Positions 4,098 through 36,880 of a stretch of DNA of 64,000 nucleotides are shown piece by piece. Position 1 is the stretch's first letter. Each line of letters starts with the position of its first letter. Source of the DNA: Asterias rubens (taxonomy: Eukaryota); contig NC_047068.1 of the NCBI RefSeq assembly GCF_902459465.1, positions 14,632,001 to 14,696,000 on the forward strand. The letters run 5' to 3'. The position numbers and the translations under genes were made by a program. The notes beneath the pieces were generated by a model. The model worked only from the letters and a program-made list of their open reading frames with translations. It had not been told where the DNA came from and did not search any database.

Positions 4098-4286
4098 ATT
4101 GGCTGGGGGTGACCCAACACTCTGCTGTCATTGGCTTAGGGGTCGACCCAATACCCCGGACGTTCAGATGAAAGAACCAGTGCGGTTTTAAGCTTGTAAA
4201 CACTTTTCCCTTCCTCCCACAAAGGGGCTTTGTGTGCGTTAGGTGATAAACAACCAGGGACCTGGGGACGTAATAATAGTATAAAA
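4098..4286 (+). promoter_or_regulatory. Putative Pol II promoter of anaphylatoxin-like gene 1
   Basis: Two reverse CCAAT boxes (ATTGG at 4098 and 4130) and TATAAAA at 4280-4286, about 150 nt before the ATG. Possible short 5'UTR intron 4348-4400 (GTAAGC...TTGCAG). Confidence 0.5.
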
Positions 4287-4438: not shown

Positions 4439-6060
4439 ATGAAGTCACAATTAGCTCTCCTCTGCTTGGCATCAATCGTGGTCGCCGTACGTGCGGGTGA
4501 GTTTCGTTTCTTGTATTTTATTTATTTACATCATGGAGGAAATCAGAAATATCTTCCTACATGTTTACATTCAGGTTTTTTTTTTCTGTAAGAGTACCGA
4601 TGAGTTTAACCTTATAAAAGGTGATGGTTTAACTCCACATTGCCAGTAGAAGCACCTGTCGAGAGCAAAGAATGAACTTTCAATCATCCTTTTCATTTTT
4701 ATTAGCAAAAGTGTATTGCCGAAAAAAGTGTAAAACTCAAATTTTATTGGACGAGTTTGAGTATTCTCAATACAGAAATTGTCTTTTCGATGTGTCTATG
4801 AATATGATGGTCGTTGATCGTTGAAACCAGCTTTCAAATAATGTGAGGCCTTTTCACAATACCTTAAAATTATCGAAGTTGTACCATGGAGAAAGAACTA
4901 AATAATATGGGATGTTTATAGGAACGTCGAAACGAGGATGGTCACATACTTAAATATTTGTTTTCTTTTCTGCTGGATCTCGGCATTAGTATAAGGTTAT
5001 TTACCTCTGCTGGATCTCGGCATTAGTATAAGGTTATTTACCTCTCTCCTCTCGGAGCAATGTTGCTTTGAAATAACCGATTATGTGTAATCAAAGGGCA
5101 AATAATTGTTGAGTTCTCCTCTGAATTATACTCTTAACGTGACATGTTTCACGTCGGGGCCAGTTACAATGATCGTGCATTAACCCGTATTCAAGGTGAT
5201 TGTTTAACTCAATGGTGCCGGTTTGCCTTTATAGTGAATGGCTAGCATGTGAACGGTTATCTTGCCGTTTCATTAGTTAACATGGTTTTGTTTTTCAAGT
5301 GAAATGGGGATGACTTTCAACACTGAATTAGCAAGCTGGACAACTTGGAGTCAATTTGACCGGTCTTCGTGTTGTTGTTTTTTAGTTTTTTTTTTTTTAC
5401 TATAGGCCTACATGCAGTGTTTGTGGAGAGGCCTAATTATGAAACCACATCCCAGTCTAATCGGGGCTCATAATAATCGAAACTTTATTGCCAACGAGCA
5501 TCAAACCATTGTGTGTTCGTTTTCAAAATCCTCAACTAATTTGGCTTATTATGTTTTTATCTTTTCTCGAAGAAGTGAAAGTTGACCAACCCAACTTCCC
5601 AGATGACGTAACGGTACCAGAGCCATCTCCACCAGCCCAAGACGACCCTGCCGATACTCTCGAAGATCTGGAGAAAGAGATCTTCGAAGACGTCGCCCTG
5701 GCCGAGGAGATGTACCCAAGACGCACCCACACGTCCCCGAGAAAATGCTGCAAGCTCGGCAGGCAGGTCGCTGAGAACGGGCTCTTCTGCAACGCAGACC
5801 TCATGCAAGTCCAGAAGCGACCCAATGTCATCCACCGTAAGAAGATGAAGTTTCACGGCCCTGTTGTTCACGGCAAGACGGTATACAAGGACCTGATGCG
5901 CCGTGTGGAGAAGTGCTCAGCAGCCAAGGCGTCCAAGAGCATGTTCACGAAATGCTGCGAATGGCAGGAAGACATTATGGGTGATTTAGAGCAGTGCAAG
6001 ACCCTACTTACTGGCACCGAGAGGAGGGAGTGCAGGAGGAGGGTGCAATCGAGACAGTGA
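4439..6060 (+). CDS. Secreted stand-alone anaphylatoxin-like (CC-C-C-CC) precursor protein 1, 181 aa, 2 coding exons
   Basis: Exon 4439-4496 encodes the signal-peptide-like MKSQLALLCLASIVVAVRA and ends at a phase-1 GTGAGT donor. Exon 5573-6060 (acceptor CTCGAAG) continues in frame: acidic pro-region, YPRR, then CCKLGRQVAENGLFC-x41-C-x12-CC (MFTKCC) plus a C-x11-C tail. Stop at 6058-6060, AATAAA at 6103. Confidence 0.85.
4969..5042. repeat. Perfect 37-bp tandem duplication in intron
   Basis: TCTGCTGGATCTCGGCATTAGTATAAGGTTATTTACC at 4969 and 5006. Confidence 0.9.
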
Positions 6061-9000
6061 AGCTGCTACTACTTGCCAAACTGAACTTTAAAGACTATGC
6101 AAAATAAACTATTACAAAATAAATGTGCTTTGCGAACTTTTGGTCTTCGTATGTTAATTAAACTATCGGGGAACAATGTTCTTCAATTTAAGGGGGCAGA
6201 AACGAAACGGGTGCGATGTTACCCCCCCCCCCAAGCCCAAATACATTCTTGAAATTTCTTTGTTTTTTAAAGTAATGCTGAATTTCATTTTGTGCAAAAA
6301 CATCGAGTTTGTTGGTTCGTCTCCGGTAGGCTTTGGCAAAAACCGTTGTGGCATTTGACCTGGTGTTTTTGTAAGCCCGGTGAGCCTTTGCAACAACACA
6401 CAACAACAAAATATAAAGTACCCCCACCCCTCCCCAAGGCTATAATTTTTCTATGCAATTTGCGTATTCCCGGGGGTCGAATACATGCAAATAAGCAGAG
6501 CTCTAGGAGTACAAGTAAAACCTTCACATCAATATTTGCAGGTGATTTCTTAGTTCTGGCCTTGTTTAAGTCAATACAAAACGACTGAGTCTATTTACCA
6601 GCTTTACAAAGAGGCTCGCTCTTAAAGGAGCTTAATATTGATCTGATTGCCTTAGTGCTTCTGAGCGCCTATTTCTCTCTGGGACATTATAATAGGTATA
6701 TTGTAGTTAGAGGCCTAGTTTCCTGGAGGGGGTTCGCTTCCGTATTGATTGTTTTCTCCAAACTTTGTATTTTAACTAAGAAGGTTTTGCGTAAGCACGA
6801 AGCAAGGGGGACATTCTGGGAATTTTGTTTGCCTCTCTCCCAAACCCGGTTGTATAATCCTACCCATCTTATTCTTCAGCTGTTTGCATGTTCCTAAAAA
6901 TTATACATTTCCCCAAATAAGCAAAATTTATATATACTTTTTTCTGTATAGCTGTGGATATGTTTAATAGAATACTTTGTATATATTAAATGTACATATT
7001 ATTTCGCTTATTATTATAAGTCATTCAAACAGTATTAGAAAGGGGTGTTGCTGAAAGTTGATAAGCCTTTCGTCGAGGCTTTCGTGGCTTGTTGTCGAAG
7101 ATGTGCAACCGTCTTGAAGGGGAGACTACATGAAGTGTGGTCTTCGATTCAAGTCACTCTAAGCTACGAAGGCCCTGACGAAATGGGAGGGCACTGGCGA
7201 CTGATTAATTTTTTTGTCAGTAACATTTTGTTTCATGGTATACATGTACATGTAGTTTGATTGATAAGATGGTTAATGTAATTCTGGGACCTTGCAGTCA
7301 TCTTCTACTTTTGTTTCTTTGATATTTCAAAATTGATAAGTTCTGGAGTCAGGGGTCTTCCTGTTGGTTTTTCTTTCGAAGCTCTTTCGAGCGTATTGTA
7401 CGGGATAATAAAGTACGTTTTTTGTAAAAGAATGTAAATAGTATAAAAATTCAATTTTGTATAGATTAAAAATGCTAATGAAAATAAATTATTTGTGTGG
7501 CATGCAATTTGACCACATTGAAATAAAAAAAAAACTTAAAGATTTCTTTCCTTTACATGTACCATTGTCAATAAGCCATTTTCGAGTATGTTAAATTTGA
7601 ATGCCTTCAAGACTTGCTAGTTCCATGACGCATGTTGCTGCTTTAAATTGAATTCCTCCTACTAGAGTGTTGGATGCTTGGTTCAAGACGATGCAGGCTC
7701 AGTGTCTTCAAACGTTGGATAATGGCTAATGTAATTTCTTGAAATACTTTTCATAATAAGTTATGCAGTCTCGTAATTTGGATAAGGGCACTTTTAGAAC
7801 CCCATACAAACCATGCAGAAGACGGAACAAAAATCGCATGAGTCGTACTGGGGGTGTCTTCATAGTTTAAGTATCTTTTCACAAATTCATCACAAAGGAC
7901 GATTAAACGAAGTAACTTTTCATTAATTCATCACAAATGACATTTAGCCTCTATTGAGGTGTCAAGAATGCATAAATCACTAAATACAAAGGAGAAACAA
8001 CCTAATATTTGTGGCACCGAGTTCATGGCCATTCAACCGTAGACTCTCTATGGTCCTTTTATTTAAAAATCCATTGGAGTGTGATGATTAATTTTCTCGA
8101 CAATAAATCCAAACCCTCTTTGTTAGAAAACCCACTCACAAAAAAAAAATCAAAGTAAGGCAACCCACTCAAGTTCATGCTTTTTTGTCAAAATTGTTTA
8201 TAGCATTGTTTTCACGTGACGTGTTCTTTTGCTAACAGTTCGCTGTACTATGTATTCACTCTAAACAAAAAGGGGGACACACAAAAAAGTAACCTTTACT
8301 CTGGAAAGTAAAGGAAAACACTTTCAAAGAATGAACAGTCGTAGGGTAAACCTTTACAATTTTCACACACAGAGAGGGCGCTCTTACTTTCTCAGATCGC
8401 TCGCTCACTTTTGTTTTCTTTTTTTTATTTCGCCAACAGCCGAAGACCCGTTTGTTTTTTGGTTTTCTTTTTGCTATTCACCGAGCAATTAAAATGTTGT
8501 TGTTATTCCCTTAAAAATTTTTTTAAAAAATCTTTGTTTATTTTTCGATACAAAATGTAATCATGGGGGACAACATTATATCTGTTATATAATACATTGT
8601 TATTACATTATTATTATTAAGATATGTTTGTGTTTGTATAATTCTTTGAACTGTTAACCCGACCTTTGCAACACCCCTAATCATTAGCAGACCATAATAT
8701 CAGCTGACTGAAATACGCATTGGTACAACTACACAGCAAAGCATGGGTTTTGTGCTCGGTGATAATAACAGTAATACCGATAAATTCTTCTTCTTTGTAT
8801 TATTTTCAGATTTGTATGTATGAAATATTTTTTGTTGTCAGCGGGTGGACGTAATCCGGTTAATACTCGAAGGTGCCATTGGACACCGTTTGTAAGAAAT
8901 GTTGTCAAACTAGGTCCTGGAAGTTCGAATACTTGCACAGTCTATTCCATAGAAATGTTAACCTATCTTGTTCATTTCATTTCAAAATATATGTGTACTT

Positions 9001-10545
9001 TCCGGTAAGCGGCCCAGAGTGCTCCCTGTACTTCTAACCGGATGGTAACATGTGAGGTACGGTGTGTTCATAAAGGCCAACCAATTGCAGAGATCACAAA
9101 AGGTAGCTAAGAACACAATAAAATGTTGCTTGCCAGAATAAGGTTACCAGCCAAACTATACCATGTCACATGAACAATGTGTGACTGGTATCCTACACTT
9201 TTCCTGCTAAGCAGAACATTCCTTAGGCAATATTTTCTGCTTTATATAAGCAGCTCAATGAAATTGTGCCCAGATTTCGCAAGAACATTTGCTCGTCCCC
9301 CATCATCAAACCGGATAAATAAAGCTCAGCACGAGAGGGCGCACTACATTGGACCTTTCAAATTGCTTGCTGAAGTTGTGTTCCTCCATGGTTGAAGTAA
9401 ACTCTTCTAACCTTGACTATCCACAGTCCATTCATTCAAAAATGATGAGCATTGCACAAATCAGCACCATGGTGTGACGTAAACATTAAGAGCCATTGAC
9501 TCCTAGAAAACCTTGATTTCATTACCAATGAAAAATGTAAGAAATGTAAACACGGGGTGCAATAACCCCGTATTATTGCCATCTGATTTTCTTGGAAACC
9601 AGTCGGGGTCTTACCTTACGGGCTGAGGTTCTCACCTTACGGGGTGAGATGAAGTGCTTGGACGGTATACGTGCAGATGTAACCGTGTTCAATATATATG
9701 GTTCAATCTTGAACTCCCCAGTGAAGTTATTTCATCACATCAGTGAAGAAGTAAGAGTGGGTGGTTGAACCATGATTGAACTTTTAGCAATCTGTGTAAA
9801 GAAAATGGTTTAAACAACGTACCCAGTACACATGTACGTTGTTTTCCCATGGTGTTGCCGTCTTTGGGTCCGTTGTGTGGTGGTGGTGGTGAGGGGGGGA
9901 TTATGACAGAAGGGTTTTCTTTCAGAAGGGGCTGGAATGATTCTATAATCCGAACATAATTATGTATTGTGTATTTGTAATACCATGCCCGACATATGGA
10001 GGGTGTGTGTCCCCATGGAGCAATAACCCAAACCCCCACCCTGCCCCCTCCCCCACCCTGGTCCGCCCCCCCCCCAAAAAAAAAGAACTTAAGAATATTT
10101 AATTTACTCGTTACTTTATGGAGACCGAGAACATAACAGAAAAGGGAATTCAAAGTATCCATTTAAAGAATAATCTGTAAAGACAAGGGCCGGTGTTTAA
10201 TGAAATTTTATAAACAAAGTCTTGGGATGTTCTGCCAGAGACAAGGGAAAGAACACAAGACATATCTATTTCTACCTCCATGCTTTAACGCACTCTTTCC
10301 CTCTTCCCAAGAAATAGCCCCTCCCCCTCCAACCCCATCTAATAAGATCCTCGTAAGAATTCCTGAGATTCCCAGATCGCACGAAGACGTGATAGGATGG
10401 GATACACTATGACACTTATCGAGCACATGGTTGTATACCATTGAATTCAAACACTTGTTCGACATTGTTTTGTTGCCATCATGTTTGCAAAAAACAATGT
10501 TTGTATTGTGTAGGATTTGAAACTTTGCATGGAGGAAATACGATA

Positions 10546-10876
10546 CAGAAAGGTTTGCGGTAACACCATGTAATGACTATCTCTAATGAGTTGGGGTGGT
10601 TCTGAAAAGAACCGTTGGTTTCAACTCGACGTTTCGATCAGTATGCTCTGATCGTCTTCTGGAGAAAGAACCGTTGGTTTCAACTCGACGTTTCGATCAG
10701 TATGCTCTGATCATCTTCTGGAGCCACCCTCCAGAAGTGGTCGTCTTCTGGAGCTTTCTCCAGAAGACGATCAGAGCATACTGATCGAAACTTCGAGTTG
10801 AAACCAACGGTTCTTTTCAGAACCACCGCAACTCATTAGAGATAGTCATTATATGGTGTTACCGCAAACCTTTCTA
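10546..10876. mobile_element. Palindromic non-autonomous DNA element (TA-flanked, Tc1/mariner-like ends)
   Basis: TA|CAGAAAGGTTTGCGGTAACACC...GGTGTTACCGCAAACCTTTCTA|TA. Nearly the whole element is a hairpin; the left arm carries a 59-bp tandem duplication (10611/10670). Confidence 0.75.
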
Positions 10877-11325
10877 TAATGTTTGTATGACTTGCTCTAT
10901 GTATGGGAGAGATTGACCGTTGTCAGCTTGGTGTTTATATCCCCCATGTGTGCAGTTTGCCGAGTTCCCTTGACGGGAAGATCATCTAATCAAACAAACA
11001 CTGGGGAAACAATACATAAATCAGTCCAAAATGACCGTACAAACATAAATAAATAAATGGAATACGCAAGATTCATATCGTCAACCAGGGCGAATGAAAA
11101 AGTTCGTTAGACTTTTCACCGTACGACACGTTGTTGTTTACAATTGCTCGATTTGCGACCTTTATCGCTAGCTTAAGTTCATTTGCGAGTGAATGCTACA
11201 AATCATCTTCCTTCAGTGATCATCCGATCTCAAGGAGAAAACAGTGTCATTAGAAGATCGTACGATCGTCCGTCGTGGAGATGGCGCAACCGCAGTCCCG
11301 CCCCCTTACCACCCCACCATCTTAA

Positions 11326-11703
11326 AGGCAGTGGACACTAATGGTATTTGTCAAAGACTAGCCTTCACAGTTGGTGTATCTCAACATATGCTTAAAATAA
11401 CAAACCTGTGAAAATTTGAGCTCAATCAGTCATCGAAGTTGCGAGATAATAATGAAAGAAAAAACACCCTTGTCACACGAAGTTTTGTGCGTTTAGATGG
11501 TTGATTTCGAGACCCCAAGTTCTAAATCTGAGGTCTCGAAATCAAATTCGTAGAAAATTACTTCTTTCTCGAAAATTATGGCACTTCAGAGGGAGCCGTT
11601 TCTCACAATGTTTTATACCATCAACCTCTCCCCATTACTCGTTACCAAGAAAGGTTTTATGCCAATAATTATTTTGAGTAACTACCAATAGTGTCCACTG
11701 CCT
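11326..11703 (-). mobile_element. TTAA-flanked MITE family A (Kolobok-like), full copy
   Basis: TTAA|AGGCAGTGGACAC...GTGTCCACTGCCT|TTAA. The body is the reverse complement of the copy at 62549-62926. TTAA target plus AG termini is the Kolobok signature; the superfamily assignment is inference. Confidence 0.8.
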
Positions 11704-11707
11704 TTAA

Positions 11708-11915
11708 AGGCCTGGACACTTTTGGTAATAACTCAAAATAATTGATAGCATAACATTTACTTGGTAACGAGCAATGGGGAGCTGTTGTTAGTATAAAACA
11801 TTGTGAGAAACGGCTCCCTCTGAAGTAAAAATAATAGTTTTTGAGAAAGAGATAAATTTCTCACTTAATTAATATTAAAAGACATGTATCTGAAGGCACA
11901 CTGAGTTGTGCAACC
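11708..11915 (+). mobile_element. MITE family A, truncated copy sharing the TTAA of the previous copy
   Basis: Starts AGGCCTGGACACTTTTGGTAAT immediately after TTAA 11704-11707 and shares the GAGAAACGGCTCCCTCTGAAGT core. Confidence 0.7.
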
Positions 11916-11926
11916 GACTCGTTGTA

Positions 11927-12265
11927 AGGCACTGGATAAGGATACGTAATTGTCAAAGACCAGTATTCTCACTTGGTGATCCCAACATAATCTGTGAAAA
12001 TTCGGACCCAATTGGTAATCGAAGTTGAGAGAGAATAAAGAAAGGAAAAAAACACCCACATTTTTGCACAAACTTGTGTGCCTAACATATTAAAAAGCTT
12101 CAGGGTGAGAAATTACCTCTTTATCAAAAACTACGTTACCTCAGCAGAGGGAGCCAGAATGTCTCATAATGTCTTATAATATCAACAGCTCTCCATTGCT
12201 ATTTACCAAGTAAATATTATGCTAACAATTATTTGGAGGAATTAATAAAATAGTGTTCCGTTCCT
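11927..12265 (-). mobile_element. MITE family A, diverged copy
   Basis: AGGCACTGG...GTAATTGTCAAAGACCAG at the left end; ends GTGTTCCGTTCCT|TTAA. Confidence 0.65.
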
Positions 12266-12793
12266 TTAAACATCTCGTGTTCGGAGATTCTCTTGAGGTT
12301 GGCACCCAAACATCATCCCATACTAATCTATCATGGCCCAGTGCCTTCCCAAGACGAATGCATCTTCACGTGGTTACTTATTAATTTCCTCAAAGTTATG
12401 TGATCGGCCAACTTCTCTTGGCAACATGCCAACGATAAAAACCGGCACAAACTTTAAAATAATTATTATTATTATTGGCAACAAGCCATGTAGTAAATAT
12501 TGTCAACAAATATTACCTTGCTTTTCCCTTTTGTAGATCGGGCCCGAAAAGGACCAACTTTTAAAGTTGGGTTTACAGCTCCATTGTTGTTGCCTTGTGG
12601 AAATTTCCCGGAGAGTAGTCACTCTCGAGAACAATCAATCACCAGCTGGTTTTTCTATGAGAGTGGTGATTCGTAAAAGAAAAAAAATCACCTGTTATAT
12701 CCATTGTTCAAAATTAATATCAACACCTGTCGAGATTGGTTTCGAAACCCAGAAGCCCACTGTACAATGGTGTCATTGTTCCGTGACCGTTAA

Positions 12794-13143
12794 AGGGTTT
12801 AGGTTCAATTTTTTTTCATTTTTGGCACAATTTAAACACAGATTTACATTAAACTACAGTTTGAAGATAATGCTTGTAGAAAGCTTCCCTGAAAAAAATA
12901 ACTTGCTGAAGCGATGTAGTTTATTTTTCTACCATATGGTACGTTTTACATGCCAGACCATAAAACTGAGACCTTTTTTTGGGCGTGTTTTGTTTTACTC
13001 ATTTCCCAAAAACTACAGCACCTCTAATGTAAGCAAGTAATATTTTAAGGGAAGCTTTCTACTATCATTATCTTCAAACCGTGAAAGTTTAATGTAAATC
13101 TGTGGACATTGTGTTTTGTGTCCTACAAAAAGTACACAACCCT
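12794..13143. mobile_element. TTAA-flanked MITE family B
   Basis: TTAA|AGGGTT...AACCCT|TTAA. The right end (ACTATCAT...CCGTG.AAGTTT.ATGTAAATCTGTG) is shared with 51602-51965. Confidence 0.6.
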
Positions 13144-14366
13144 TTAAAGTGACGTGTGTTTTTTGCTGGTTTCATAAACAACACCATGGAGGAAAAGTTC
13201 CTCCATAACAACACCACTTCGTGAACAACAACAAACAAACCCCAAATCGGTTGCGGCATTTCTCCTGATGTAAACAACATGTAATTTAACACCATTTTCA
13301 CAATACGTTTGTTGTTGTTTAACACCTTTAACCTTCTTGTCATGACAAATACCAGGGGGGTAAATGACTCTTTCTGTAATTATATGTTTGCACATCTTGG
13401 CAGTCGTTTTCGGTTTTCCACTCGTGCCAATAAGTTAAAATGCAGTAATAGTTAATTTGTTCAAGGCCGATCGTTAAGATATATTTACTTACAAATTAGA
13501 ACCTCAGTAGTCCATTTTAAGTATTGTTGATAGTGGTAGGCCCGTATATTTTATATTTCAGATAGTCAAATGACTTTATATTTTTGCTTCTTAAAGGTGT
13601 TTCCCCCCATCTACCTTAACTTAAAAAGTAGTTTTATAGCTTCGTTCACCGAAGGACCTGCTGCTCCTCCAGTCTATGACAAAAACAATGGTGCAACGAG
13701 AAGCCCAAAAGAAGGACGATTTCTTGAACTGCGAACTCGTAACCTCAAATCCGTACTTTCCCAGCACTTCCAAAAAAAACTTGTTGTTAGTTACGAACAC
13801 ACATCCGGAAAACAACATCTCAAACTAGCGTTCCATTGTCCTTATTTGCAGAATATTTGTTCTATTTTTTTGTTACCAAACACTATCTGCATTTCGTAGC
13901 GTCACAGTATCTATCTGGTATGTGATTATTTGTTTTTATCTGAGCTGGATGTTTTGGGGTTTCACGTGGTACTATTATTTTCCAAACACTTCTGTGTGTG
14001 GTATTCAGTTGAACTTTCATTCACACCAACCCACTTGTTATAAAGGATCCATTATTGTTTGGTAATTGAAACCCACTGTTTGTTTCAATCCAAGTTGAAG
14101 ATACCATCAAGCTCTAACCTGTGAAAATTTCACTTCAAAAGGTGGTAGCGTTTTTTAGATATTGCCGAAAACCCGGAATAATCCCTTATAAATACACAAT
14201 CTGAGAAGCGTTACTCTGTAACGCTTTCCAGATCCAAATCTCTGGATATCTTTTTACATTCAAAGTGTCGGCCTGAGACAAAGGTTTAGGTCAACACAAC
14301 GTTTAGGACTTGAAACGCTACGTGGACTTACACACACACCCACACAGTGTTTTCGCTGGAGTCTAA

Positions 14367-14754
14367 AGGCAGTGGACACTATTGGTAATTACTCAAAATA
14401 ATTATCAGCATAAAACCTCACTTGGTAATGAGTAATGGGGAGAGGTTGATTGTATGAAACATTGTGAGAAACGGCTCCCTCTGAAGTGACGTAGTTTTCG
14501 AGAAGAAAAAAGTGATTTTCCATGTATTTGAATTCGAGACCTCAAGTTTAGAATTTGAGGTCTAAAAAATTAAGCATCTGAAAGCACACAACTATACGTG
14601 TGACAGGGGTGTTTTTTTTCCTTTATTAATAACTCGCAACTTCGACAACCGATTGAGCTCAAAATTTCACAGGTTAGTTATTTTATGCATATGTTGAGAT
14701 ACACTGTAAGTGAGAAGAATGGTCTTTGACAATTACCAGTAGTGCCTAGTGTCT
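14367..14754 (+). mobile_element. MITE family A, full copy
   Basis: AGGCAGTGGACACTATTGGTAATTACTC start, same internal core as the other copies, ends ...GTGTCT|TTAA. Confidence 0.8.
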
Positions 14755-14970
14755 TTAAAAGTGCACATAACAGAACCAAGGAATATGTCCAGCGAGTGTA
14801 TAAGATATAGACACTATAGATGAATTGATTGTGTTTACCACACATTGCCTAGATAGTTGCTTGTTGTTATCTGTTGCTTGTTATTCCCTCGAAGTGTTTG
14901 TCCTGAATACCTTGCTCTATTTAGAGACAGATATGGCAGGAGTTTGTGTAACCAAACGTGATGAGTTTAA

Positions 14971-15337
14971 AGGAACTGGACAGTATGGGTAATTACTCAA
15001 AATATTGTTAGCATAAAAACTTACTTGGTTACGATCCTCTCTCTATGGTAACGAGTAATATAGAGCTGTTGATTAGATAAGACATTGTGAGAAACGCGGG
15101 CTCCTTATTAAGTAACGTAGGTCTCAATCGAATACTTCGGGTAGAAGGGTTTGAAGCCCTTTTTAGGCACCTGAAAGCACACACTTGTGAAACAATGTTT
15201 TTTTCGTTTTCATTGTTCTCTTGCAACTTCGATGACGAGTCCATTCGTTCACAGAATTTTATGCACAAAATGTTGGGATATACTGGGATAAAGTGAGATT
15301 ACTGATCTTTGACGATTACCAAAGGTGTCAAAGACCT
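14971..15337 (+). mobile_element. MITE family A, diverged full copy
   Basis: TTAA|AGGAACTGGACAG...GTGTCAAAGACCT|TTAA with the conserved internal core. Confidence 0.7.
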
Positions 15338-16858
15338 TTAATGTGAGAAACTATCTGAGGAATTGGTGACATATCGAATGATGGAATGACCAAGTCCTGT
15401 GAGTTGAAATAATCTGAATAAAGTTCAAGTAAATCCTAAATTCGGCGACTCGTATATATACAGACATTTATTTGGGATATATTTTTAGTACTAATTTGTT
15501 ATCTAAACAAGTTATTGTTACTCTTTATTTTCAGAACCTATAAAGATTTGCCCAAGATTTTCCTCATTGTCGATATAGGCAGCAGCAACGTCACGGTTCC
15601 TGGCATCTGACAAGTCATCTTTTAAGGATTGATGCATTCCAGGTAAGCCCAACATCATGGTTTAAAGAGCTAGAAGTTAAGAATTTATACGGAAAGACTC
15701 GCATCCTTTCTGACCAAGGGTCGTAAAAGGTTTTGGTTCTCCTTGGTGTGCACGAGGACAGAATTTTGGGGATGGCGTGCCTCCACTTTAAGTGAGGTAT
15801 GGGGTTAGTTGTGAACCACTGCAATCCTCTATCTTAACAATTGGTCACAACAACTATTTCAGATGTTTTATGGGATGGGTGAAGTTGCCATTCCCCCTAC
15901 CTTTCCCCCTCCTACTCACCCAACCGTCCAGCCCAAACCAAATTCGATACGTTAAAGTAGTGTTACTACTCTCTTCATGAAAAAGAGTGGGAAAAACTCG
16001 TTTTGTCAGCCATACCGCTCTTGCAAAGAGCCATATGACGGACAACTGTTTTAAGAGTGAAAGACGGGTACTTTCAACTCGATTTAGAGTGATACTTCGT
16101 TCCAATTTCACCCCAAAATGAGTGACACAGATTAACTTTCACTCTCAAAAGAGCGAAAATGACACCACTCGGACAAGAGAGTGAAATGTTTCATTCTTTT
16201 TTAAGATAGTAAACGTTTGGTATTCCCAACGTATCTGAAGTATCTGTATTCCATAGCCAAAACATGGTAAAAACCTATAAAATAAAACCCCATGTTGCTC
16301 CCCCAGCTTAACATACCAGATAAGCCGGGGACACACTCAAACGGCCAATCAATCACACAACCAAGTGTCAATAATTGACAAAGTGTAAAAGGTGTTTGTT
16401 GGGATCCCACATCTGAAGCACCCATCAATTGCGGTTTAAAAGGGTCAACGAATTCAATCAGTGGGGTTTAGGGTCCACGTGGTTTTTGCAAAGCTCGGAT
16501 GTTCCTTTATATTATGATACGCAACATCTCTGCGTGATACCCTCCTTTGGCAAGATTAAAAACACACAGTGTTGAGAGGGGAAAAAATGGCCTTGTGATA
16601 TCCCGGCTCAATCCGGAACCATCATAACATTCCACGCATGTTTCACGCAGAGGTATGAGCCGTCAGATAACAAATTCTGTCACATCAACTCAGCTTGACA
16701 TAAAAAGAATACCCTGGAAATCGTGTTGTATTATTGTGTTCGGTGGATCGAGCTCTGTTTAATCATGTTGATAAACAAAGATCGCAACCGGTTCCCATTG
16801 GGTAAAAGGGGTACAACGCCCATACGATCGTAAACGATAAACACAAGGAGCGAACGCG

Positions 16859-17035
16859 ATTGGACGAGCGGCTCGAGCCCCCATCACTGGCGCTGCTCTC
16901 TCATTGGCTGAGTGGCAAGGTCCGTGGTGCTGACGTCATCGTGAACTTTAGCATATAAACAGACCCAGAGGTTTACGAGATTTCAGAAAAACAACGTGCA
17001 CGCTGTGAGAACGAACTACCAAGTGAGGAAACCCG
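16859..17035 (+). promoter_or_regulatory. Putative promoter and non-coding first exon of anaphylatoxin-like gene 2
   Basis: ATTGG at 16859 and 16903, full CRE TGACGTCA at 16931-16938, TATAAA at 16954-16959. Donor GTGAGA at 17036 and acceptor TTTTAG at 17122 define an 87-nt UTR intron. Confidence 0.65.
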
Positions 17036-17161
17036 GTGAGAAATTCAGGGTCAGAATCGAGAAGTCTAGAATTTTAATACCAAAACAAATAGTCTCATAA
17101 GGATTTGCAGATTTTGTTTTAGGTTTCTTTGTGAAAGTTTTCGCGGTAAACGTTTATAGCA

Positions 17162-20100
17162 ATGACTAAACCATCGTACTTGATTGTGCTGTTCGTGGTT
17201 TGTACCACACTCAGAAGCTGCGTGGTGGCAGTCAGATTCAAGACATTGGCAGGTAAGACTTTAAAGACTTTTAAAGACTGTAAACATAGAGCTAGAACTA
17301 TAAGTAAGACACCATACAATAAAACTGAAATTGTTTGCTATTATCTGATGATAGCACAATAGATGTGTAGGATTAGAGTCAAATTATTATTAGCTAGAGC
17401 ATACGGTGGTTCTACTCTCATTGGTTTGGTTATATACCACGGAGGTAGGTTATACCATGGTTATACTGGTGAGTGAGTGTATATTTATGAATAGGTGTAT
17501 GATGAGCATGGGGGTGAACTGTGGTGTGTGTGAGTTAGCATAGTTTCTTATCTCTAGGGACTTGAATTCATAGCAACATGGGCATGATTTATCGGATTAT
17601 TATGTGACCCACATTTTGTGACTTCACTTAACTTCACATATAGTTTATCCTGGAAAATCTTATCTGTGTGATTAATTGGGATTGGTTAACTGTAATCTGG
17701 AGCCTGTGTTAGGGGTTGTTAGAAGGTCACTGGAGTGGTACGGTGGAAGGGATACCAGACCACTATTACCAGAGCATTAACATTTCCAAGAAGTATATGT
17801 AGGTAAAATTAATTATTCAATCAGTATCCTGTTGACTTTAACGGAAGTCACACCTACCTAGCCATAGGCCTATACGATTATTACTACCAATGATGATGTG
17901 TATGTCAAATTTAATGCCTACCGGTTGTGTCACTTATGAAGCACATGGCGAGTTCAATAAGCTATATATAGACCATGTAAACCTGTGACACCACAGAAAG
18001 GGACACAGAGCCTGGACTTCCTGCAGGCATATGTTGTACATAATCAGCCCACGGGAAGAAAACATTAAATCTAATAATTTATGGAAATTGCACTGTCCGA
18101 ATTTTGTATCGACTTTTGTATGAAGAAATTTAACACGTCTTAAAATTTGCTCAGTAGTTTTGTTCTTGAATTTATGTGGAAATTGTGATACCAAAATAAA
18201 ATTTCCCATTGACCAGTATTGATTATGTGTAGTATTATCTGCCAGAATGGCACTGGTACTAGCCTGGAATACACCACAAGTGAAAGTCACTTTCGTTTGT
18301 AAAAAAAAAAAATTAAAATGGTCCAAACAAATTCCGTATTTATTACACCACAGTGATGAACAAAGGTCAATGGCCTGTTGGTTTTAAATAGTTATTCGTA
18401 CACGGTAATTCCAGGATTCTCAGTAATGTTCAAAGCAAAACTTTTACCAACTGTTGCAGCTCCCTCACGAGCTACGCAACTGAAATAACCTTCAACTGTT
18501 GCGTCCCATCAAATTGCAATGACAGCCACAGTGGCCTGCCTGGTACATGAGTTTTGGATCCCATAGATGGGCCGTCCCTTTTGTAACATAAACTCTCAAT
18601 AAAAATTGGGACCGGTCCCTTTCTGTGCTTATATCAGTTGGGACCGGTCCCTTAGTTTGGAGCGGTCCCTTATAAATAGTTTGTACATTGGGACGACTCG
18701 TTAGTTTGTATGGAACAATAATACCCAATAATCTGGCATGATGAATATGTGTCCTTGTATTTTGAAGTAAAGGAAATTATACAATGGATTCAGATTTCAC
18801 AACGAAACACATCCTCACATGACGTTTCGTCATCATTGACGTATGTCGTTACCGATTGTGTATACCCCCAAAGTACATTGTTGTGGTTTGACTTTATGCA
18901 TGTCGTGACATTTAGGGTCATTAGTAGGGTGACGAAGTCTAATACAGCCAACAATGGGAAACCAAAACCACACCAAGAATTGATTTATCTCCACCTCGAT
19001 ATGATCTTTCAGTGTGGGTAGAAAGAAGTTCTCTCACCCTCACTTATCTTGACTAATATCCGCCAGGGTGTCACTTATTATCGAACAACACAAACTGGCT
19101 AATTCTGGATACCGACTTTCACTTCTTGAAAAATCAGGTATAATTTCTGACTTAACAAGAAGTGACAGCCAAGTTAAATGTGTTCTTAGTCTAGACTTCA
19201 TTAGCGACGTTCGTTTTAGTTACCAATATCGCAACACAAACTACTGTAGAAAAGATATATCACACAAACATGTGTATCGTTTTGATCCATATCCTTCGAC
19301 AAGTCCCTCCGAGCATCTCTGAGATGAGCCAGTCGGTCGTTGTGAGAAAATACACAACATTAGCATTGGCAATGAATTTAGCAATTTAGGACGCCGGGAA
19401 AATTACGTAAGAAACCGGAAATAGAAATATAAACGTGTGCAAACATGAGGTGTTGATTTATTTTTATGATGAATTTGCCTGAAGGTAATGGAAACAATAA
19501 ATTGTATTTCAGGGCTGTATGCTTCGTTTCAGAAAGGGTAAGGGCACCAAGGCATTTTCTCTTTTGCAAAGGGCACCCTATGAGGAAATGGTAAATTTCT
19601 ACTGGAGCATTTCAAGGGCACCAAGGCAATGGCAAGGGGCAACGGAGGCAATCGCCTCCGTTGCCTCCGTGAAGTATCAGGCCTGGTATTTATTATCGAT
19701 CATAAAACAGAAGCTTTGCAATACTTCAGCCCCTCCCCCCCCAAACAATAATTCAAGCAAAATGGATCGCAGCATCAAGTTTCAATGCTGGCATGGAGTG
19801 CGCCGGTAGTAAAGCAGCATGACCCGTCGGCTGTTTATGATATTATTCCCGCGCATAGTTTATTTACAGTTCGCATTTCTGCAATACTGCTTGGGTTTTG
19901 GCGGCAACTGTTGCGCACGAGTTGGCAAAGTTTATCGTACAAGCAGGTCGATACAGGTGGGTAATTTGTCTCTGACAATCAAAGATCACCCATATATCAA
20001 ATTTTGTAGATGTGTAAGAACAATGGATTTTTTGTGTCCCCCCCCCCCCATTTTGTATGTTCACACAAATTATCCTGGATGCGCAGTTTTGCTATTCAAC

Positions 20101-23100
20101 CAAACCTTCAGATGAAGCCCTACCCCCTCCACCCCCCCCCCCCCTAAAAAAAACCAAAACACCCTTATACCGATACGGAAAAAGGCTAGAAAGGCTGTTG
20201 CTGAAGAAACTCCCTGTGGGGCGCTTTAACAAAGAAACCCTGTGGTGCGGTAGCATTGTTAAGTACCCCACAAGCTGACGTGTGTGGGGGGGGGGGGGGC
20301 ACACCCATCAATCTTGCTCAGCAATCAAACCATGAACGAGGCAACCAAACTGGACTACTTTACACGTATAGTGTGAACACTATTTCACAATCACTGCGTG
20401 CTACCGGAAAACATTGATATCTACTACAATCAATACAGCCTTGACCATGCTGACTGGACATTTCCTTTATTTGTTTGTATTTAAATAAATAATTGTGAAT
20501 ACGGTTTTCCCATCACCATCAGGCCGTACACATTTTTTGAACTAGAGATACCGTGGCGTTTCCCGCTTCTTGTCCACATTAGCTGACCATTTTGTTCAAC
20601 CTCAACAATTGTCTATTTTATCTAAATAATAAACCACAAGGGAAACTGACTGGGTAAATTTGGGGCATCGGTGTAAAGGAAAAAAAAAAAAAAAAACAGT
20701 TTATAAAGAGTGGCGGGAATTTCAAACAGCAATTTTTGCCACGCTGGTGTACTTTAAAAAATAAAATTATAAAAGAGGACTTGAAACCGACCACAAACAT
20801 GCTATTATAGTTGATGCGTTGTACAACACAGGGTTATTACTAATGCTCGTTTTCGTCAGTGAGTCACAATTATTGCCCCAATATGCAGCAAAGATGATGA
20901 CCTGGATTGGTAGATGCCCGAAAGGGAGATTTTTATTTTTATGAAAGAGTGGAATTTCATGAAGTCAATTTTTCCCTGGTTTCCAATAGTAATTCATTCG
21001 TAGATGATTATTATAAACCTGTACATTTGTTAAACTGTATAGATAATAGTGTGACCATGGAAGTATAAATAGAAGTTTGACTGAATACAGCGATATCTTT
21101 TGGTTTTCATGGGTCTTCAAAATGCTAATGTTTTACCTTGGAGACCATCGCTGCAGATGGGTGTAGCGCTATGCGAGCATGCATATAATAATTTTCCCCA
21201 ACAATTACCCATACTGGATATTCATTGTTCTGTTGAACTTGATGTAGATACTTGGTTTGGTTGAATCTCTAGAAGAGTCAACCGGTATTTACTTGACATT
21301 ACCGGTGATCAAAACAGCTGTAGAAAAGGGTAACCTTTCGGAAGAGCAAAACAAGAATTACTAGAGAACAAATCGAAAGCATAGAGCCACCATAATACCT
21401 CAAATCAAAACACTATTGGTTCTCGCTCATAGACTTCTAACCATAAAAACAGCTGCTGTTGTCAGCTGGTCGTCGTGATGTCACCGTGTGACTTGACACC
21501 TCAAGTACCCTATGGGATCGTAAGGGCACCCCCAAGGCAGCAGAGCTGTTCCTCTCGGCAGCATCGAAAACTTGACTCAGAATCACAAGACCCGGGGAAA
21601 GAAGGAGAAGATGGTTGCATCATTGGTTTTCATTTCGATCCACGGCTGTGAACCTGGCCCGATGAGACCTTGTTTGTGACCGCAGCGTGGTGAGCCCAGG
21701 GGTACCCTGGCGCTCTGCTGGGACCGACCGATGAAAGGTCAAGTTCGAGACCTCGTGGCCGGCGCTCAACTCACGTCATCCGATGTGATTGATATCCCTT
21801 TTGTATTACGTTGTGGTTAACGAGAAGCTGTGAGGGATCGTGAATGTCACGAGAAAAGAAAATTATTAAAGGGACTAAGCAATGGATTTTCTGAAAAATA
21901 CATTTTCAAACATCTAAACTTACAGAAATATATTTTTTTACAAACTGGAAACTTTAATATTATTGTATTTCACATTTTTGTGTTTTAAGTTCGGTTGTTA
22001 CGCAGGCCCCGTGTAAAATGATTGGTCTAGTCCGCGTAAAATAACACAGAACATACTTATCAAGGGAGACAAAGATTATTCGATGTGGTCTATGCAAACA
22101 AACTTAATTATTTGGTAAATAAGAAAACTGTGTAAATGACGGTATATAAATTACAAACTTAACGAGGCCATTAGGGAAGTAATCTGAATTCCCGTTTCAG
22201 AAACTAAATTTAGTTCCGTTTGACTATGCTCCTCACATGTTTTCTCTACGTGGCCACGACTCGTAACACCTTGTCCAAATTGCGTTCCAAATTACGAACA
22301 AGCCGAAATATTCAAAACATCTGTAACTTGCGTCTTTTTAATTCTAAATTGCCAACAAACTCGACCGAAAAGATGTTTACTGAAGTTCGTTTCTGAATTT
22401 GAACATGTGTCTTGATTTTATTGACTCCAAATTATCTCGATCTGTCCCCGGTTTCTTGACCAAATGCTGAGCACATGTTCCAACAGCTGAGGAGATGCAA
22501 TTATGGTTGGAGAACATTCCTTCATACCGAGGTCGCGAACATGTCATGCCATCTTGCATTCTGTCACTCAGTCATGTGCAAAATCTGCTCAACCTTTCGG
22601 CTCTGTAATGGGTGGGGTCCCTGGTTTTGTAAGGAAGAGTGTATTATATAAAGCCAAGAATGCTCTAGAAAATGTTGAGTTGAAACATATGGATGTATTC
22701 GGCTTTGCTCTTTTTCGGTACCGCTCGCTATGGAGACCCAAGGACAAAACAAAAATGGAAAACATAAGGACTCTAACGAAGAATTCTCAAGACTAGGTTG
22801 CTCCCCAAAGATGTGTAATGTACATGGGAAGGTGTGAAGTGCAGGGATGAAGGAAAGAACAAAAGAATGCTTAATAAGGATGCATTTTTTAGAAAGTGTA
22901 GATACAAATATGAATACCGGTCACATATTTGTGTCTCTCCTAAAATGTGAGAATATTGTGACTTAATGAAAACTTTTTTTTCGATGGAGTTAACACTTCT
23001 AAAGAACACGTGCTTAGCAAATTGTGTAGAAAGAACACGTGCTTCGCAAATAGTGTGGATTTTTCTTTTCTGTGGTAGTTGTTTGTAATAATCCACGCTA

Positions 23101-26100
23101 TTGTCATACTGACCACCATCCATCAAGGATGCATCAATCTTATCATGCCTCCATGGTAAAATAAATTTACAAAGTACAAAATCATTCACACCGAACGATG
23201 CAGGTGTGATTATAATGAAGATCAAAGGAAACCGTATAAAATAAAACACCCTATTAAAAAATTACGGGTCAAGTAAAGTAAACAAAAGAGTCACTTAAAA
23301 TTCCTTCCATGTGTTATAATAATTCGGGTTTAAACAAAGCATAGAACAGATCATAAAAAAGGCAGGGTCAAACAGAAACAGTTTGCACTCCATTTTATTT
23401 GTTCTCCCTTCATTGTTATTTTTTATTTTTTTGTAGAAACTAGCGAGTCGTATCATGTCGTATCAACGTAAGGCATGCCCCTATCTATCGGTCAACAAGT
23501 TTTATTCCCGACAACCACAAAAACAACTTGATTAACTCCAGGCCCTAAATCTCTGCGGAATGATGTTATGGCAGAAACACATGTGTGCCGTTGGTAGAGA
23601 GGGTTGTTTGGCAACATGTTTGGCCTTGGTGTACCCCCAAGGTTAACTGGGACAGCTGTGGAGTTGAGGTTCCCTTGTCTTTCATCACCTTGCTGAGTGA
23701 TGGGCTCCTTAACCAAACGGTCCAGGGTCCACGATTCTAAAAGTGACACCAAGGCATGGAAGAAAGTATTACCCATAAATTTGCACCAAAGTGGTGGAGA
23801 TATTCTGTAGTCAATAAGAAAAGGTCCTTGACTCTTGTTTGTTCGGTTATTTGTCCCTGCACTTGTTAACCTGTTTCAAATGATCTTGATAAGTGGAATT
23901 CCACAAAACAGGAACCCAATTACTATCACTATCAGTGGAATTTTATCTTTTGAATGACAATGTTTATTGTCTTTGTGCAAACGCGGGGGAAAAAAAAGAA
24001 GTAATAATGACCATTGGCGCTCATTTTGTTTACAAAATAATGACCACCGGTTTGCGTTGGCAGCCTTGTGTAGCATAACAGTAAAAGCCTTGGCTGTCTT
24101 GGGTGTCAACCATTAAATTCATCAGTAATAAATGATAATAATGAAACAATTTATATTTGCTGTATTAAAGCTTCTCTTTTGCGATGAAGGCCACCGATTT
24201 GTTTGTTGGCAAAGCAAAACTTTCGGCTGTGACATTGCAAAAAAAAGTATATAACAACAAATGGCCAAATTAAACCGTTGTTGCAGTCAGCACAATTGTA
24301 TAGTATTATCTGGCACTGATTGGTATCTTGTTTTTGCTGTGCAAGATTTGTCAGTACTAACCACAGCTTTGGGGGAAAAGTTTATGAAAGGTTACCACAC
24401 AAAAATACATTTCTTGAGTTTTCTGGCAGAGCTGAAGAAATAAACATTCCTACATGAGCTTGATTTTTTGCGGTTATAGAGGGACAATCTTCTTAAAACA
24501 ATCTACATAGCTACATCATACTGTGTTACCACACACCAATTGATTTTCTCCTGTTCACACACAAACAGCTTGGCCGATATCAGGCAGATCGCATTCTCAA
24601 TTTAATCGAACTATAATCGAACACACTGGAATGTGCCAAACAACTCAAAACTCATTCTTGATAACACATATTTTACTTCATGGAAAAATAACAGCAACTG
24701 ATAACTAATCTGACTCGGTGATAACACCATTCCATGTTGTAAACAAAAAGCAGAAATATTGGCCAAACATATTCTTTATATCTCATTGATGAATAACCTT
24801 GAAACAAAAGGAAGGTGTAGTAGAGAGCTATGGAATTTGTTAACGTCATAAATGACTGAATTTCACTGGACTTACTAATGATTTTCCTACACAAAAGTCA
24901 GTACAAACACATTTAATGAATATAATTGCTATCATTATGTTGTGCTCAATCAAACATCCTTGGTTGAGTCACCTCTGTTGTCAAAGGTACATATGTAATT
25001 TTTCAAAAGATATGCACAGCAGCTAGGATAGGAACACCACAGAGGAAGTAAGTGTTCCTTCATTCATGGAATGGTATCACTAAGTGAAATTGATTTAACA
25101 CAAGTTGATTGCTTGTTAGTTATGGGTATTCCCACTCAGGGCCCATTAAAGTACAATATGTACATGTATATAGTATCAGTTTCCCCTGCCCCAAAGTATG
25201 CAGAGATAAGTTAATAGGATTGGATATGGTTTTATTTTGTCGATAGAATTAGAGAAGCTTAACTTCAAATGGTATGTTGTATCTTAAATCAAGTGATTAC
25301 AAAAATATATATTTGAGGAATAGATAGCTAGGCTAAGGTTTAAATACAAAGACATGATTGGAGGTTGTACAAAAAAAATTAGTTGGGTGGTTCATTCTGA
25401 AATCTTGCTGATAAAAGGTCATAATCCTGCAGAAATATTTCAATGTCTGAAATCAGGTCTGGGATATTTCAGCTTTGAGAGGGCAAGGCTGTTTTTATTT
25501 TGCATCATCATCATCATCATCAAGTCGAGCGCCATCATCAAGTCGAGCCTGCTCAGTGATTTTTATTTTGCATAATGAGGGCACTTGAAAAATCCTAAGT
25601 CTACGCGAAAAGTTTTGAGGGGCACCAAGGCCAAGACCAGGGCAACAGGCCATGTGAAATAATGTCTAAGTTGAGCAAATGACATGCTATCCCACAAATC
25701 AGTGATATCATTGTTGCTTGTTTTGATGGCAGCAATCAAAATAAGCCTGAAAGTGATTGTGCACAAAATTGTATTCATGTAATAAAACATGATTAATTTT
25801 TATAATATAAATCGGTTGGTTAGGGTTGGGAGATAGTTATATGAAATTGTTTAAAACCAGCAAAGTACCTTTCATTTTAACTGGGTTTGAAAAAAGATAG
25901 ATTTACTGGAGTGGAACTTGAACCAACGACTTTGGGATTAACATACACTTTTCTTTTATCCTCTCCAGAGTTGCTAGAATACCATGAACAGCAACAGAAT
26001 CCAGGCTCAGACGAGGAGCCAACTTCTACAGTTCACCCAGAACATGAAGGGTTGATGCTGGTCACTTCACAGCCGCCCACTCCACAGCTTCCAAGTGTCC

Positions 26101-26941
26101 CTGCCCACCACAACCGCCGTCATCATTATCATCATCATCAAGATCCAGAAGTGTACGGCAGTGGAGCGGAGCCCACCTCGATCCTGTCCACCACAACGAC
26201 GAGGCTGGTGATGGAGACAGAGCTCCCCACGACGACCAGACCAAAGACCACATGTTGCATTCTAGGAGAGCAGGCTGGCATGAAGAGACATCACTGTAAC
26301 CCTGACAACTACATGCCAAGATTTAGGTAAGAATGACACTTCAGCAACTCTAGACCAATCCAGGGTCAAAGGCCAGCAACTTTTGGATCAGAGGGGGGGG
26401 GGGCTATCCTCCCAAATTCAGGCAAAGTTGAGGTAATTTGGAGCACAGCAAGAAGGAAAGAATGGCACGAGAGAGAAACTTAAACTTTTTTTCACATGGT
26501 ATTAGAAATTGGTAGTTAATTTGGGGGATAAATAGACCCCTCTGCCCTTCAAAAACCAAAGAAAGGTGAACTTATGACTGGCTACACATCCTCGACTCAT
26601 TGCAATAATTCCTTATCTTAAAAATTTTTGGTCCCTCACCCAGAGAAACTGATTTCAAACAAACATTTCAGAAATTGACAGCACAGAAATATAACTTGTC
26701 AAAACCTTTTTTCCCCCAAATTCTCAGAGACTACAATCGTCGCCATAACTTCAAGCAGTCCAACCGACACCCAAGCATAGAGAAGAGCCAATTCGACAAG
26801 TGCACCTCCGGTATCATCAGAAGACATGCCGAAGAGTTCAGGACTTGCTGCCAAGAAGCCTATAAGATGTTGTGGCAGCAAGAGAGAGGTGAAGAGAACG
26901 TTGGCAACGGCAGGATCCATCTTATTGAGGTCCCAATATAG
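17162..26941 (+). CDS. Secreted stand-alone anaphylatoxin-like protein 2, 220 aa, 3 coding exons
   Basis: Exons 17162-17252 (signal-peptide-like MTKPSYLIVLFVVCTTLRSCVVA; phase-1 GTAAGA donor), 25969-26326 (His/Thr/Pro-rich linker then CCILGEQAGMKRHHC; phase-2 GTAAGA donor) and 26728-26941 (...DKC-x14-CC, EFRTCC; stop). All phases match and AATAAA follows at 27058. The join across the 8.7-kb intron is inferred. Confidence 0.8.
19510..19685. mobile_element. Short non-autonomous element with CAGG termini and 6-bp TSD (hAT-like)
   Basis: GTATTT|CAGGGC...GGCCTG|GTATTT. Homologous to 34955-35110; related fragments near 25580-25660 and 47540-47715. Confidence 0.7.
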
Positions 26942-36791: not shown

Positions 36792-36880
36792 GCAGCAGGC
36801 TATGGGGTTCAAAGGTCACACGTACACTAAACTTCGGGAGTTCAATCGTAGAGAGGTTGCCAAACTCAATATGCAAGATG
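36781..36880. promoter_or_regulatory. Compact bidirectional promoter region (RRM gene / COX19)
   Basis: The minus-strand ATG at 36791 (followed by a GTAAGT donor at 36780) and the COX19 ATG at 36878 are only 87 nt apart. Confidence 0.5.

Follow-up and report, generated by a model that had tools for sequence, protein, structure and literature searches.

Two neighbouring genes of the starfish Asterias rubens encode small secreted cysteine-rich proteins of an unnamed metazoan family with an anaphylatoxin-like signature

The window analysed here is a 64,000-nucleotide (nt) stretch of the Asterias rubens genome (RefSeq assembly GCF_902459465.1, contig NC_047068.1, positions 14,632,001 to 14,696,000 of the forward strand), and all coordinates below are window positions. 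It contains two + strand genes for small secreted proteins, gene 1 (4439-6060) and gene 2 (17162-26941), each with its own TATA box and with about 11 kb between them (gene 1 stop 6060, gene 2 TATA 16954). An earlier note, made from the letters alone, described them as a tandem pair of stand-alone anaphylatoxin-like proteins, each with a signal peptide on a phase-1 exon of its own, a linker and a single cysteine module, and this arrangement is seen in both genes. The products are 95-99% identical to Asterias amurensis proteins, and both fit one family of short animal proteins that appears undescribed.

Gene 1 appears to have its own promoter, since a TATA box (TATAAAA) can be read off the sequence at 4280-4286 (+), about 155 nt 5' of the ATG at 4439. 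Exon 1 contributes 58 coding nt (4439-4496, +, phase 1), for the signal peptide MKSQLALLCLASIVVAVRA and 1 extra nt, and ends at a GTGAGT donor. The 1.08 kb intron closes with a NAGNAG tandem acceptor (gaAG/AAG/tg, 5570-5576, sites 5573/5576), giving two isoforms of 181 and 180 amino acids (aa) that differ by a single Glu behind the signal peptide. The two acceptors would account for the X1/X2 isoform naming of gene 1 orthologues in three starfish species, where the isoforms also differ by one Glu; the A. rubens product is 99% identical to the A. amurensis 'uncharacterized protein isoform X2'. Exon 2 (5573-6060, +, alternative start 5576) encodes an acidic N-region and a basic eight-cysteine domain, and ends in the stop codon at 6058-6060. 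The cysteine domain (5746-6057, +) reads CC-x12-C-x41-C-x12-CC-x12-C-x11-C, has a net charge of +12 and an isoelectric point (pI) of 9.7, and finishes with the C-terminus ...RRRVQSRQ. The stop codon had been placed directly after the module in both genes, but this does not hold for gene 1, where 33 further residues bear two more conserved cysteines (C-x11-C), which makes it an eight-cysteine protein. The signal peptide is conserved across the orthologue alignment, and in nine species the annotated or transcript-derived orthologues show its exon joined in frame.

Gene 1 is also expressed, as its transcript is found at 23-85% of sampled words in runs X1, X4, X5, X11 and X12 of the RNA record (two studies). 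These runs are marine metatranscriptomes, and the highest share, about 0.85 of the words from 5573-6200, fits a transcript that ends just past the polyadenylation signal AATAAA read from the sequence at 6103-6108 (+). The source of the runs hints at expression in planktonic larvae or shed material.

Gene 2 has promoter elements at 16931-16959 (+), namely a palindromic cAMP response element (CRE)-like octamer TGACGTCA (16931-16938) and TATAAA (16954-16959). The coding part of exon 1 (17162-17252, +, 91 nt, phase 1) encodes the signal peptide MTKPSYLIVLFVVCTTLRSCVVAVRFKTLA plus 1 nt, ahead of a GTAAGA donor and a first intron of 8.7 kb. Exon 2 (25969-26326, +) encodes a His-rich and Thr-rich linker and the first half of the module (CC-x12-C) and ends in phase 2. 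After the second intron (26327-26727), exon 3 (26728-26941, +) encodes the rest of the module (C-x14-CC) and a tail of 28 residues up to the stop codon, and the 3' untranslated region extends beyond 27200. The 220-aa product, with the C-terminus ...HLIEVPI, corresponds to the A. amurensis protein P0010, which exon 1 matches as well.

The gene 2 model is confirmed exactly by spliced contigs. Contigs from four runs in four studies cover exons 2 and 3 and skip 26325-26725 at GT..AG, a cut that equals the intron 26327-26727 when shifted by +2, and their upstream letters are those of 17220-17249, the end of exon 1. Their 5' parts span 238-251 nt, so the transcript probably starts near 17000. The earlier note had called for a junction check and had raised the possibility that a long mRNA of fibulin or C3 type takes up these exons; the contigs, just 1.0-1.3 kb in length, show that this is not so.

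The exon 2 linker of gene 2 carries a His-rich run (HHNRRHHYHHHQ) and Thr-rich runs (STTTTR, PTTTRPKTT) at 26090-26145 and 26185-26250. Such runs point to possible metal binding and O-glycosylation of the mucin type. A His-rich patch is shared by the gene 2 orthologues of Acanthaster and Patiria. In the promoter, an inverted CCAAT box (ATTGG, 16903-16907), the perfect octamer and TATAAA all lie within 60 nt. The octamer occurs four times in the window against 0.75 expected, a count reached in 1 of 100 shuffles.

A profile of the 112-aa cysteine domain was searched against 1.84 billion representative sequences with a threshold of E<1e-3, and it matched 52 clusters, all of 73-341 aa. The relatives span six phyla. 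The named members come from the anthozoans Nematostella and Exaiptasia, the molluscs Pomacea, Elysia, Nucella and Potamilus (gastropods and one bivalve), the horseshoe crabs Limulus and Tachypleus, the sea spider Pycnogonum and oribatid mites, and, among deuterostomes, the crinoid Antedon, Diadema and other urchins, starfish, the hemichordates Glandiceps and Ptychodera, and the amphioxus Branchiostoma. No vertebrate, insect or nematode is among the members named by this search. The two proteins had been proposed to be free-standing and secreted, and this is borne out by the small size of their relatives, the short gene 2 transcripts and the lack of any thioester, MG or EGF context.

The family also appears to be undescribed, as had been suggested. 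No Pfam domain is found in any member and no Pfam model exists for the family; a literature search under 12 gene or protein identifiers found no paper on it, and a keyword search found nothing relevant to stand-alone anaphylatoxin-like proteins. The member names are all "uncharacterized" or "hypothetical", except for two GenBank entries from Branchiostoma belcheri (P0012 and P0061) called 'Small G protein signaling modulator 3'. This name does not fit a 176-aa secreted cysteine-rich protein and looks like an annotation transfer error. What is known already is the kind of protein, which is small, secreted, cysteine-rich and helical with an anaphylatoxin-like signature.

The module spacings are as first claimed, CC-x12-C-x41-C-x12-CC in gene 1 and CC-x12-C-x34-C-x14-CC in gene 2, and in both a G stands at +3 from the first CC and F-x-x ahead of the last CC. 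The first CC, the G at +3, Cys3 and the last CC are invariant or nearly so among the 52 family representatives, as are all six core cysteines, those of the two window genes included. The CC-x12-C half is invariant in 52/52, while the Cys3-Cys4 gap ranges over 31-48 residues and the Cys4-CC gap over 9-16. Since the cysteine pattern is nearly invariant across the 52 representatives, it is not due to chance. Both window genes fit the family by profile match, signal peptide and a single basic module with CC-x2-G-x9-C and F-x-(K/x)-CC.

The members fall into three types. Type A, which includes gene 1, has eight cysteines and is highly conserved. Type B has six; besides gene 2 it takes in proteins from Ptychodera and mites and the gene 2 orthologues of Acanthaster and Patiria (P0073 and P0074, 54-56% identity). 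Type C is cnidarian, also with six. Cys7 and Cys8 occur together in the eight-cysteine rows of the alignment and are jointly missing in types B and C, with one truncated row keeping Cys7 only; this joint presence or absence suggests that Cys7 pairs with Cys8 and implies a probable Cys7-Cys8 disulfide. That the two window genes form one family is supported by hhalign, which gives 98% for A vs B (E 7.5e-14), 99% for A vs C (E 3e-18) and 97.8% for B vs C, and gene 2 scores 22-24 bits against a type-A-only hidden Markov model. By these profile comparisons types A and B are homologous. The relationship emerged only via the wider family, as a direct hhalign comparison of gene 2 exon 3 by itself with the gene 1 profile gave no match.

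Orthologues of gene 1 are found in Acanthaster, Patiria, Diadema, Glandiceps and metatranscriptomes (E 1e-35 to 1e-104). Gene 1 shares 72-78% identity with its starfish orthologues, 53-58% with those of urchin and hemichordate, and 43% with amphioxus over the 112-aa domain. In a maximum-likelihood tree, the type B sequences form a clade (100/98), within which the Ptychodera protein is the sister of gene 2 (94/88); types B and C group together against type A (96/85), and deuterostome type A is one group (88/92); the tree is unrooted and gives no order of events. Both types A and B hold chelicerate and ambulacrarian sequences, suggesting that the A/B split is older than the protostome-deuterostome divergence. 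Gene 1 appears to represent a slowly evolving type A and gene 2 a faster-evolving type B.

The family profile found two members only in this genome, one per type, with gene 1 scoring E 5e-34. The two orthologues share one scaffold in A. amurensis, Acanthaster and Patiria, and their LOC numbers are two apart in the latter two. Downstream, an RRM-domain gene (31400-37000) is collinear with the gene 3' of the gene 2 orthologues in Patiria and Acanthaster (L002:22027-26310; L003:25725-27642), which argues that the locus is orthologous across starfish orders. The gene pairing is probably old within starfish.

In all members examined the cysteine domain is basic (net +3 to +33, pI 8.6-10.6), most weakly in the starfish gene 2 type (pI 8.6-9.1 against 9.2-10.6 in the others). 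In ambulacrarians it has a charge of +10 to +14 and follows an acidic N-segment (-6 to -13) with a conserved L-E-x-L-E-x-x-x-F motif. A first AlphaFold2 model built from 8 sequences was poor (predicted local distance difference test score, pLDDT, of 66), and its fold searches matched an amphioxus family member only. The second model, built on the 52-sequence alignment, is all-helical with six helices and a pLDDT of 81.6, and it places Cys4 and the last CC on separate helices. The anaphylatoxin (AT) regions of fibulin-1 and -2 recur in fold searches, tied for best structural neighbour with scores at noise level. An ESM Atlas shape search returned unrelated bacterial helical proteins only, and ESM Atlas feature searches with the whole protein or the domain only gave no usable match, an indication of low recognition by protein-language search. 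Albumin/ECM1-type CC double loops, saposin-like proteins, MANF and big defensin, considered from general knowledge, turned up in none of the sequence or fold searches.

The earlier note had regarded the AT fold as established by the cysteine pattern, and this is not upheld. Neither window protein shows a Pfam domain at E<=10. The Pfam ANATO model (PF01821) has 36 positions, is dominated by six cysteines and has a gathering threshold of 21.4 bits; it matches 2 of the 52 members, at best with E 0.081 and 14.3 bits, and in P0014 the match covers model positions 1-23 only, aligned on the CC..G..C half. ANATO and HipN are the only Pfam families that match two of the 52. A six-frame search of this genome with PF01821 gave nothing, even at E 10. 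Among PDB sequences (E<=10), the family profile matches two C3a chains only (E 0.8), with the C..F.KCC.Y half of the family aligned to the C-terminal half of C3a, C-K-K-V-F-L-D-C-C-N-Y, and hhalign of the family profile with the C3a segment gives a probability of 8%. These are weak signals in the AT direction, none of them significant. The canonical AT spacing is CC-x12-C-x9-12-C-x6-CC; C3a and the residue numbers of fibulin-2 give this spacing, with CC-x12-C in fibulin-2 module 1 (PMC11220139). Across the 52 members the first gap fits, but the other two are far off. The disulfides of an AT domain link Cys1-4, Cys2-5 and Cys3-6, and its helical fold has Cys1 and Cys2 on one helix and groups Cys4-6 on one helix. 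The core of the starfish-pair family most resembles an AT-type module with a putative helical insertion of 30-40 residues between Cys3 and Cys4, and the chances are about even that the resemblance reflects common descent rather than convergence. The family is not filed under ANATO and is described here as AT-like with a large insertion.

The ANATO domains of complement C3a, C4a and C5a share with this family the cysteine order CC...C...C...CC, an identical CC-x12-C spacing, the Gly at +3 from the first CC and an aromatic residue three positions ahead of the last CC; both are small, cationic, all-helical (here predicted) and disulfide-locked (here probably so). Unlike the starfish-pair family, C3a has a Cys3-Cys4 gap of 12 and a Cys4-CC gap of 6. 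Complement ANATO is excised from a thioester protein, whereas the precursors here are stand-alone and 180-220 aa long, and type A has a putative fourth disulfide and an extra helix. In fibulin-1 and -2 (PDB 8r5w; PMC11220139) the AT modules are fused in tandem into one domain before the EGF repeats, whereas the starfish proteins are a lone module with a large insertion, and contain neither an EGF domain nor the C-terminal domain of fibulins. Small secreted cationic cysteine-rich ligands, such as chemokines and defensin-type peptides with anionic pro-pieces, are similar in their signal peptide, small size, high pI and disulfide stabilization, and the acidic N-segment before the basic domain of ambulacrarian members recalls the defensin-type pro-pieces. 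However, no sequence or fold relationship to chemokines or defensins was detected, the domain is helical rather than beta-rich, and its conservation is far above that of typical defence peptides.

Taken together, genes 1 and 2 are best read as two independent genes, each expressed and present in one copy, whose products are conserved secreted cationic ligands or matrix-binding factors of one ancient, unnamed metazoan family (probability about 0.6). A family member would consist of a signal peptide, a linker that varies between members, and an all-helical, strongly basic domain marked by CC-x2-G-x9-C ... C-x9-16-(F-x2)-CC, to which type A would add a C-terminal helix stapled by the fourth disulfide. 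Removal of the signal peptide would release a disulfide-locked cationic helical domain (+8 to +33) outside the cell. There it may bind an acidic partner that has been conserved, be it a receptor on the cell surface or sulfated glycosaminoglycans and matrix, and act as a soluble signalling or matrix-associated factor. The 53-58% identity of type A between echinoderms and hemichordates argues for a conserved binding partner, and the strong conservation of type A together with the single copy of each type favours a secreted ligand or a matrix or glycosaminoglycan binder over a fast-evolving defence peptide. In ambulacrarians the acidic N-segment probably masks the basic domain or serves as a pro-piece.

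Several points weigh against this reading. The biological role of all family members, the disulfide pairing, the processing and the binding partner are what we infer. The acidic N-region and the basic residues (a dibasic pair) before the CC are not conserved outside ambulacrarians and type B, so pro-piece processing does not extend to the whole family. The adjacency of the orthologues in Acanthaster and Patiria is taken from shared scaffolds and LOC numbers, not from coordinates, and in Patiria, Acanthaster and Ptychodera a tblastn search of the 10 kb upstream of the gene 2 type found no gene of the gene 1 type.

The earlier note itself favoured an alternative in which the proteins are true, divergent AT homologues that act like C3a and C5a, as free-standing chemotactic or immune ligands for a C3aR/C5aR-type G-protein-coupled receptor, with no convertase involved. 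The six-cysteine signature agrees with this, as do the invariant CC-x12-C common to C3a and fibulin-2 module 1 (PMC11220139), the CCxxG and F-x-x-CC motifs and a domain that is cationic and, in the AlphaFold2 model, helical; C3a chains are also the sole PDB sequence matches, ANATO is the joint-most matched Pfam family (two members, tied with HipN), and fibulin AT modules tie as best structural neighbour. However, every such test falls below significance, and the gaps of 31-48 and 9-16 stand against 9-12 and 6 in AT domains, in which Cys4-6 moreover share one helix (PMC11220139) instead of lying on two as in the model. Both starfish proteins lack a C-terminal LGLAR/MQLGR-type effector tail ending in Arg, the type A C-terminus lying within the predicted extra stapled helix, and the family occurs in cnidarians and mites with no sign of a C3aR-type receptor partner. 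Homologues with such an action are quite unlikely, and the C3a/C5a-like function proposed for the pair is speculation.

Cationic host defence appears less likely still. Here the proteins would be antimicrobial, with an anionic pro-segment neutralizing a membrane-active, disulfide-stabilized domain until its release. Small, secreted, cysteine-rich proteins in which an acidic N-region precedes a strongly basic domain, as in ambulacrarians, would suit this role, and the range over horseshoe crabs, molluscs, amphioxus and echinoderms recalls that of some invertebrate defence peptides. But the very strong conservation of type A, which extends to the surface motifs KMKFHG and YKDLMRRVEKC, and the presence of only one gene per type in this genome are both unusual for defence peptide genes, which evolve fast and expand; molluscs, chelicerates and cnidarians lack the acidic pro-region. 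The least probable of the three rivals makes the proteins extracellular-matrix adaptors with a structural or binding role like that of the fibulin N-terminal AT region, rather than diffusible signals. The fibulin-1/-2 AT regions are the best, though weak, structural neighbours, the high positive charge suits glycosaminoglycan binding, and the mucin-like Thr-rich linker of gene 2 is probably O-glycosylated. On the other hand, the structural matches are non-significant, and these are very small single-domain proteins that lack the multivalent modules usual in matrix adaptors and show no sign of oligomerization.

With its conservation since the cnidarian-bilaterian ancestor, one copy of each type, a secretion signal, and no name, Pfam model or literature, the family makes a good candidate for an extracellular signal or matrix factor that has been overlooked. 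That it appears to be missing from vertebrates, insects and nematodes would explain the oversight. The binding partner of type A could be sought in echinoderm, amphioxus or Nematostella systems, which are tractable. Should the AT resemblance reflect descent, it would bear on the origin of the complement C3a/C5a module and of the fibulin N-terminus, and would suggest that such a module can work alone without proteolytic release. A bolder proposal is that a free-standing relative of the AT module was present in the cnidarian-bilaterian ancestor, that the ANATO of C3/C4/C5 and the fibulins shares its origin with a stand-alone secreted ligand, and that types A and B represent an ancient, unrecognized extracellular signalling system kept in marine invertebrate lineages; this is unlikely, if not to the degree of the three rivals above.

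The noncoding DNA of the locus has repeats of its own. The gene 1 intron carries a direct tandem duplication of about 37 nt in two copies (ctgctggatctcggcattagtataaggttatttacctct, 4960-5045). Between the genes lie two sets of transposon-like inverted repeats, one at 10544-10878, a 125-nt hairpin pair that is 97% complementary with 85 nt between its arms, and the other at 11374-14704, with arms of about 300 nt in total that are 82-92% complementary and flank about 2.7 kb.

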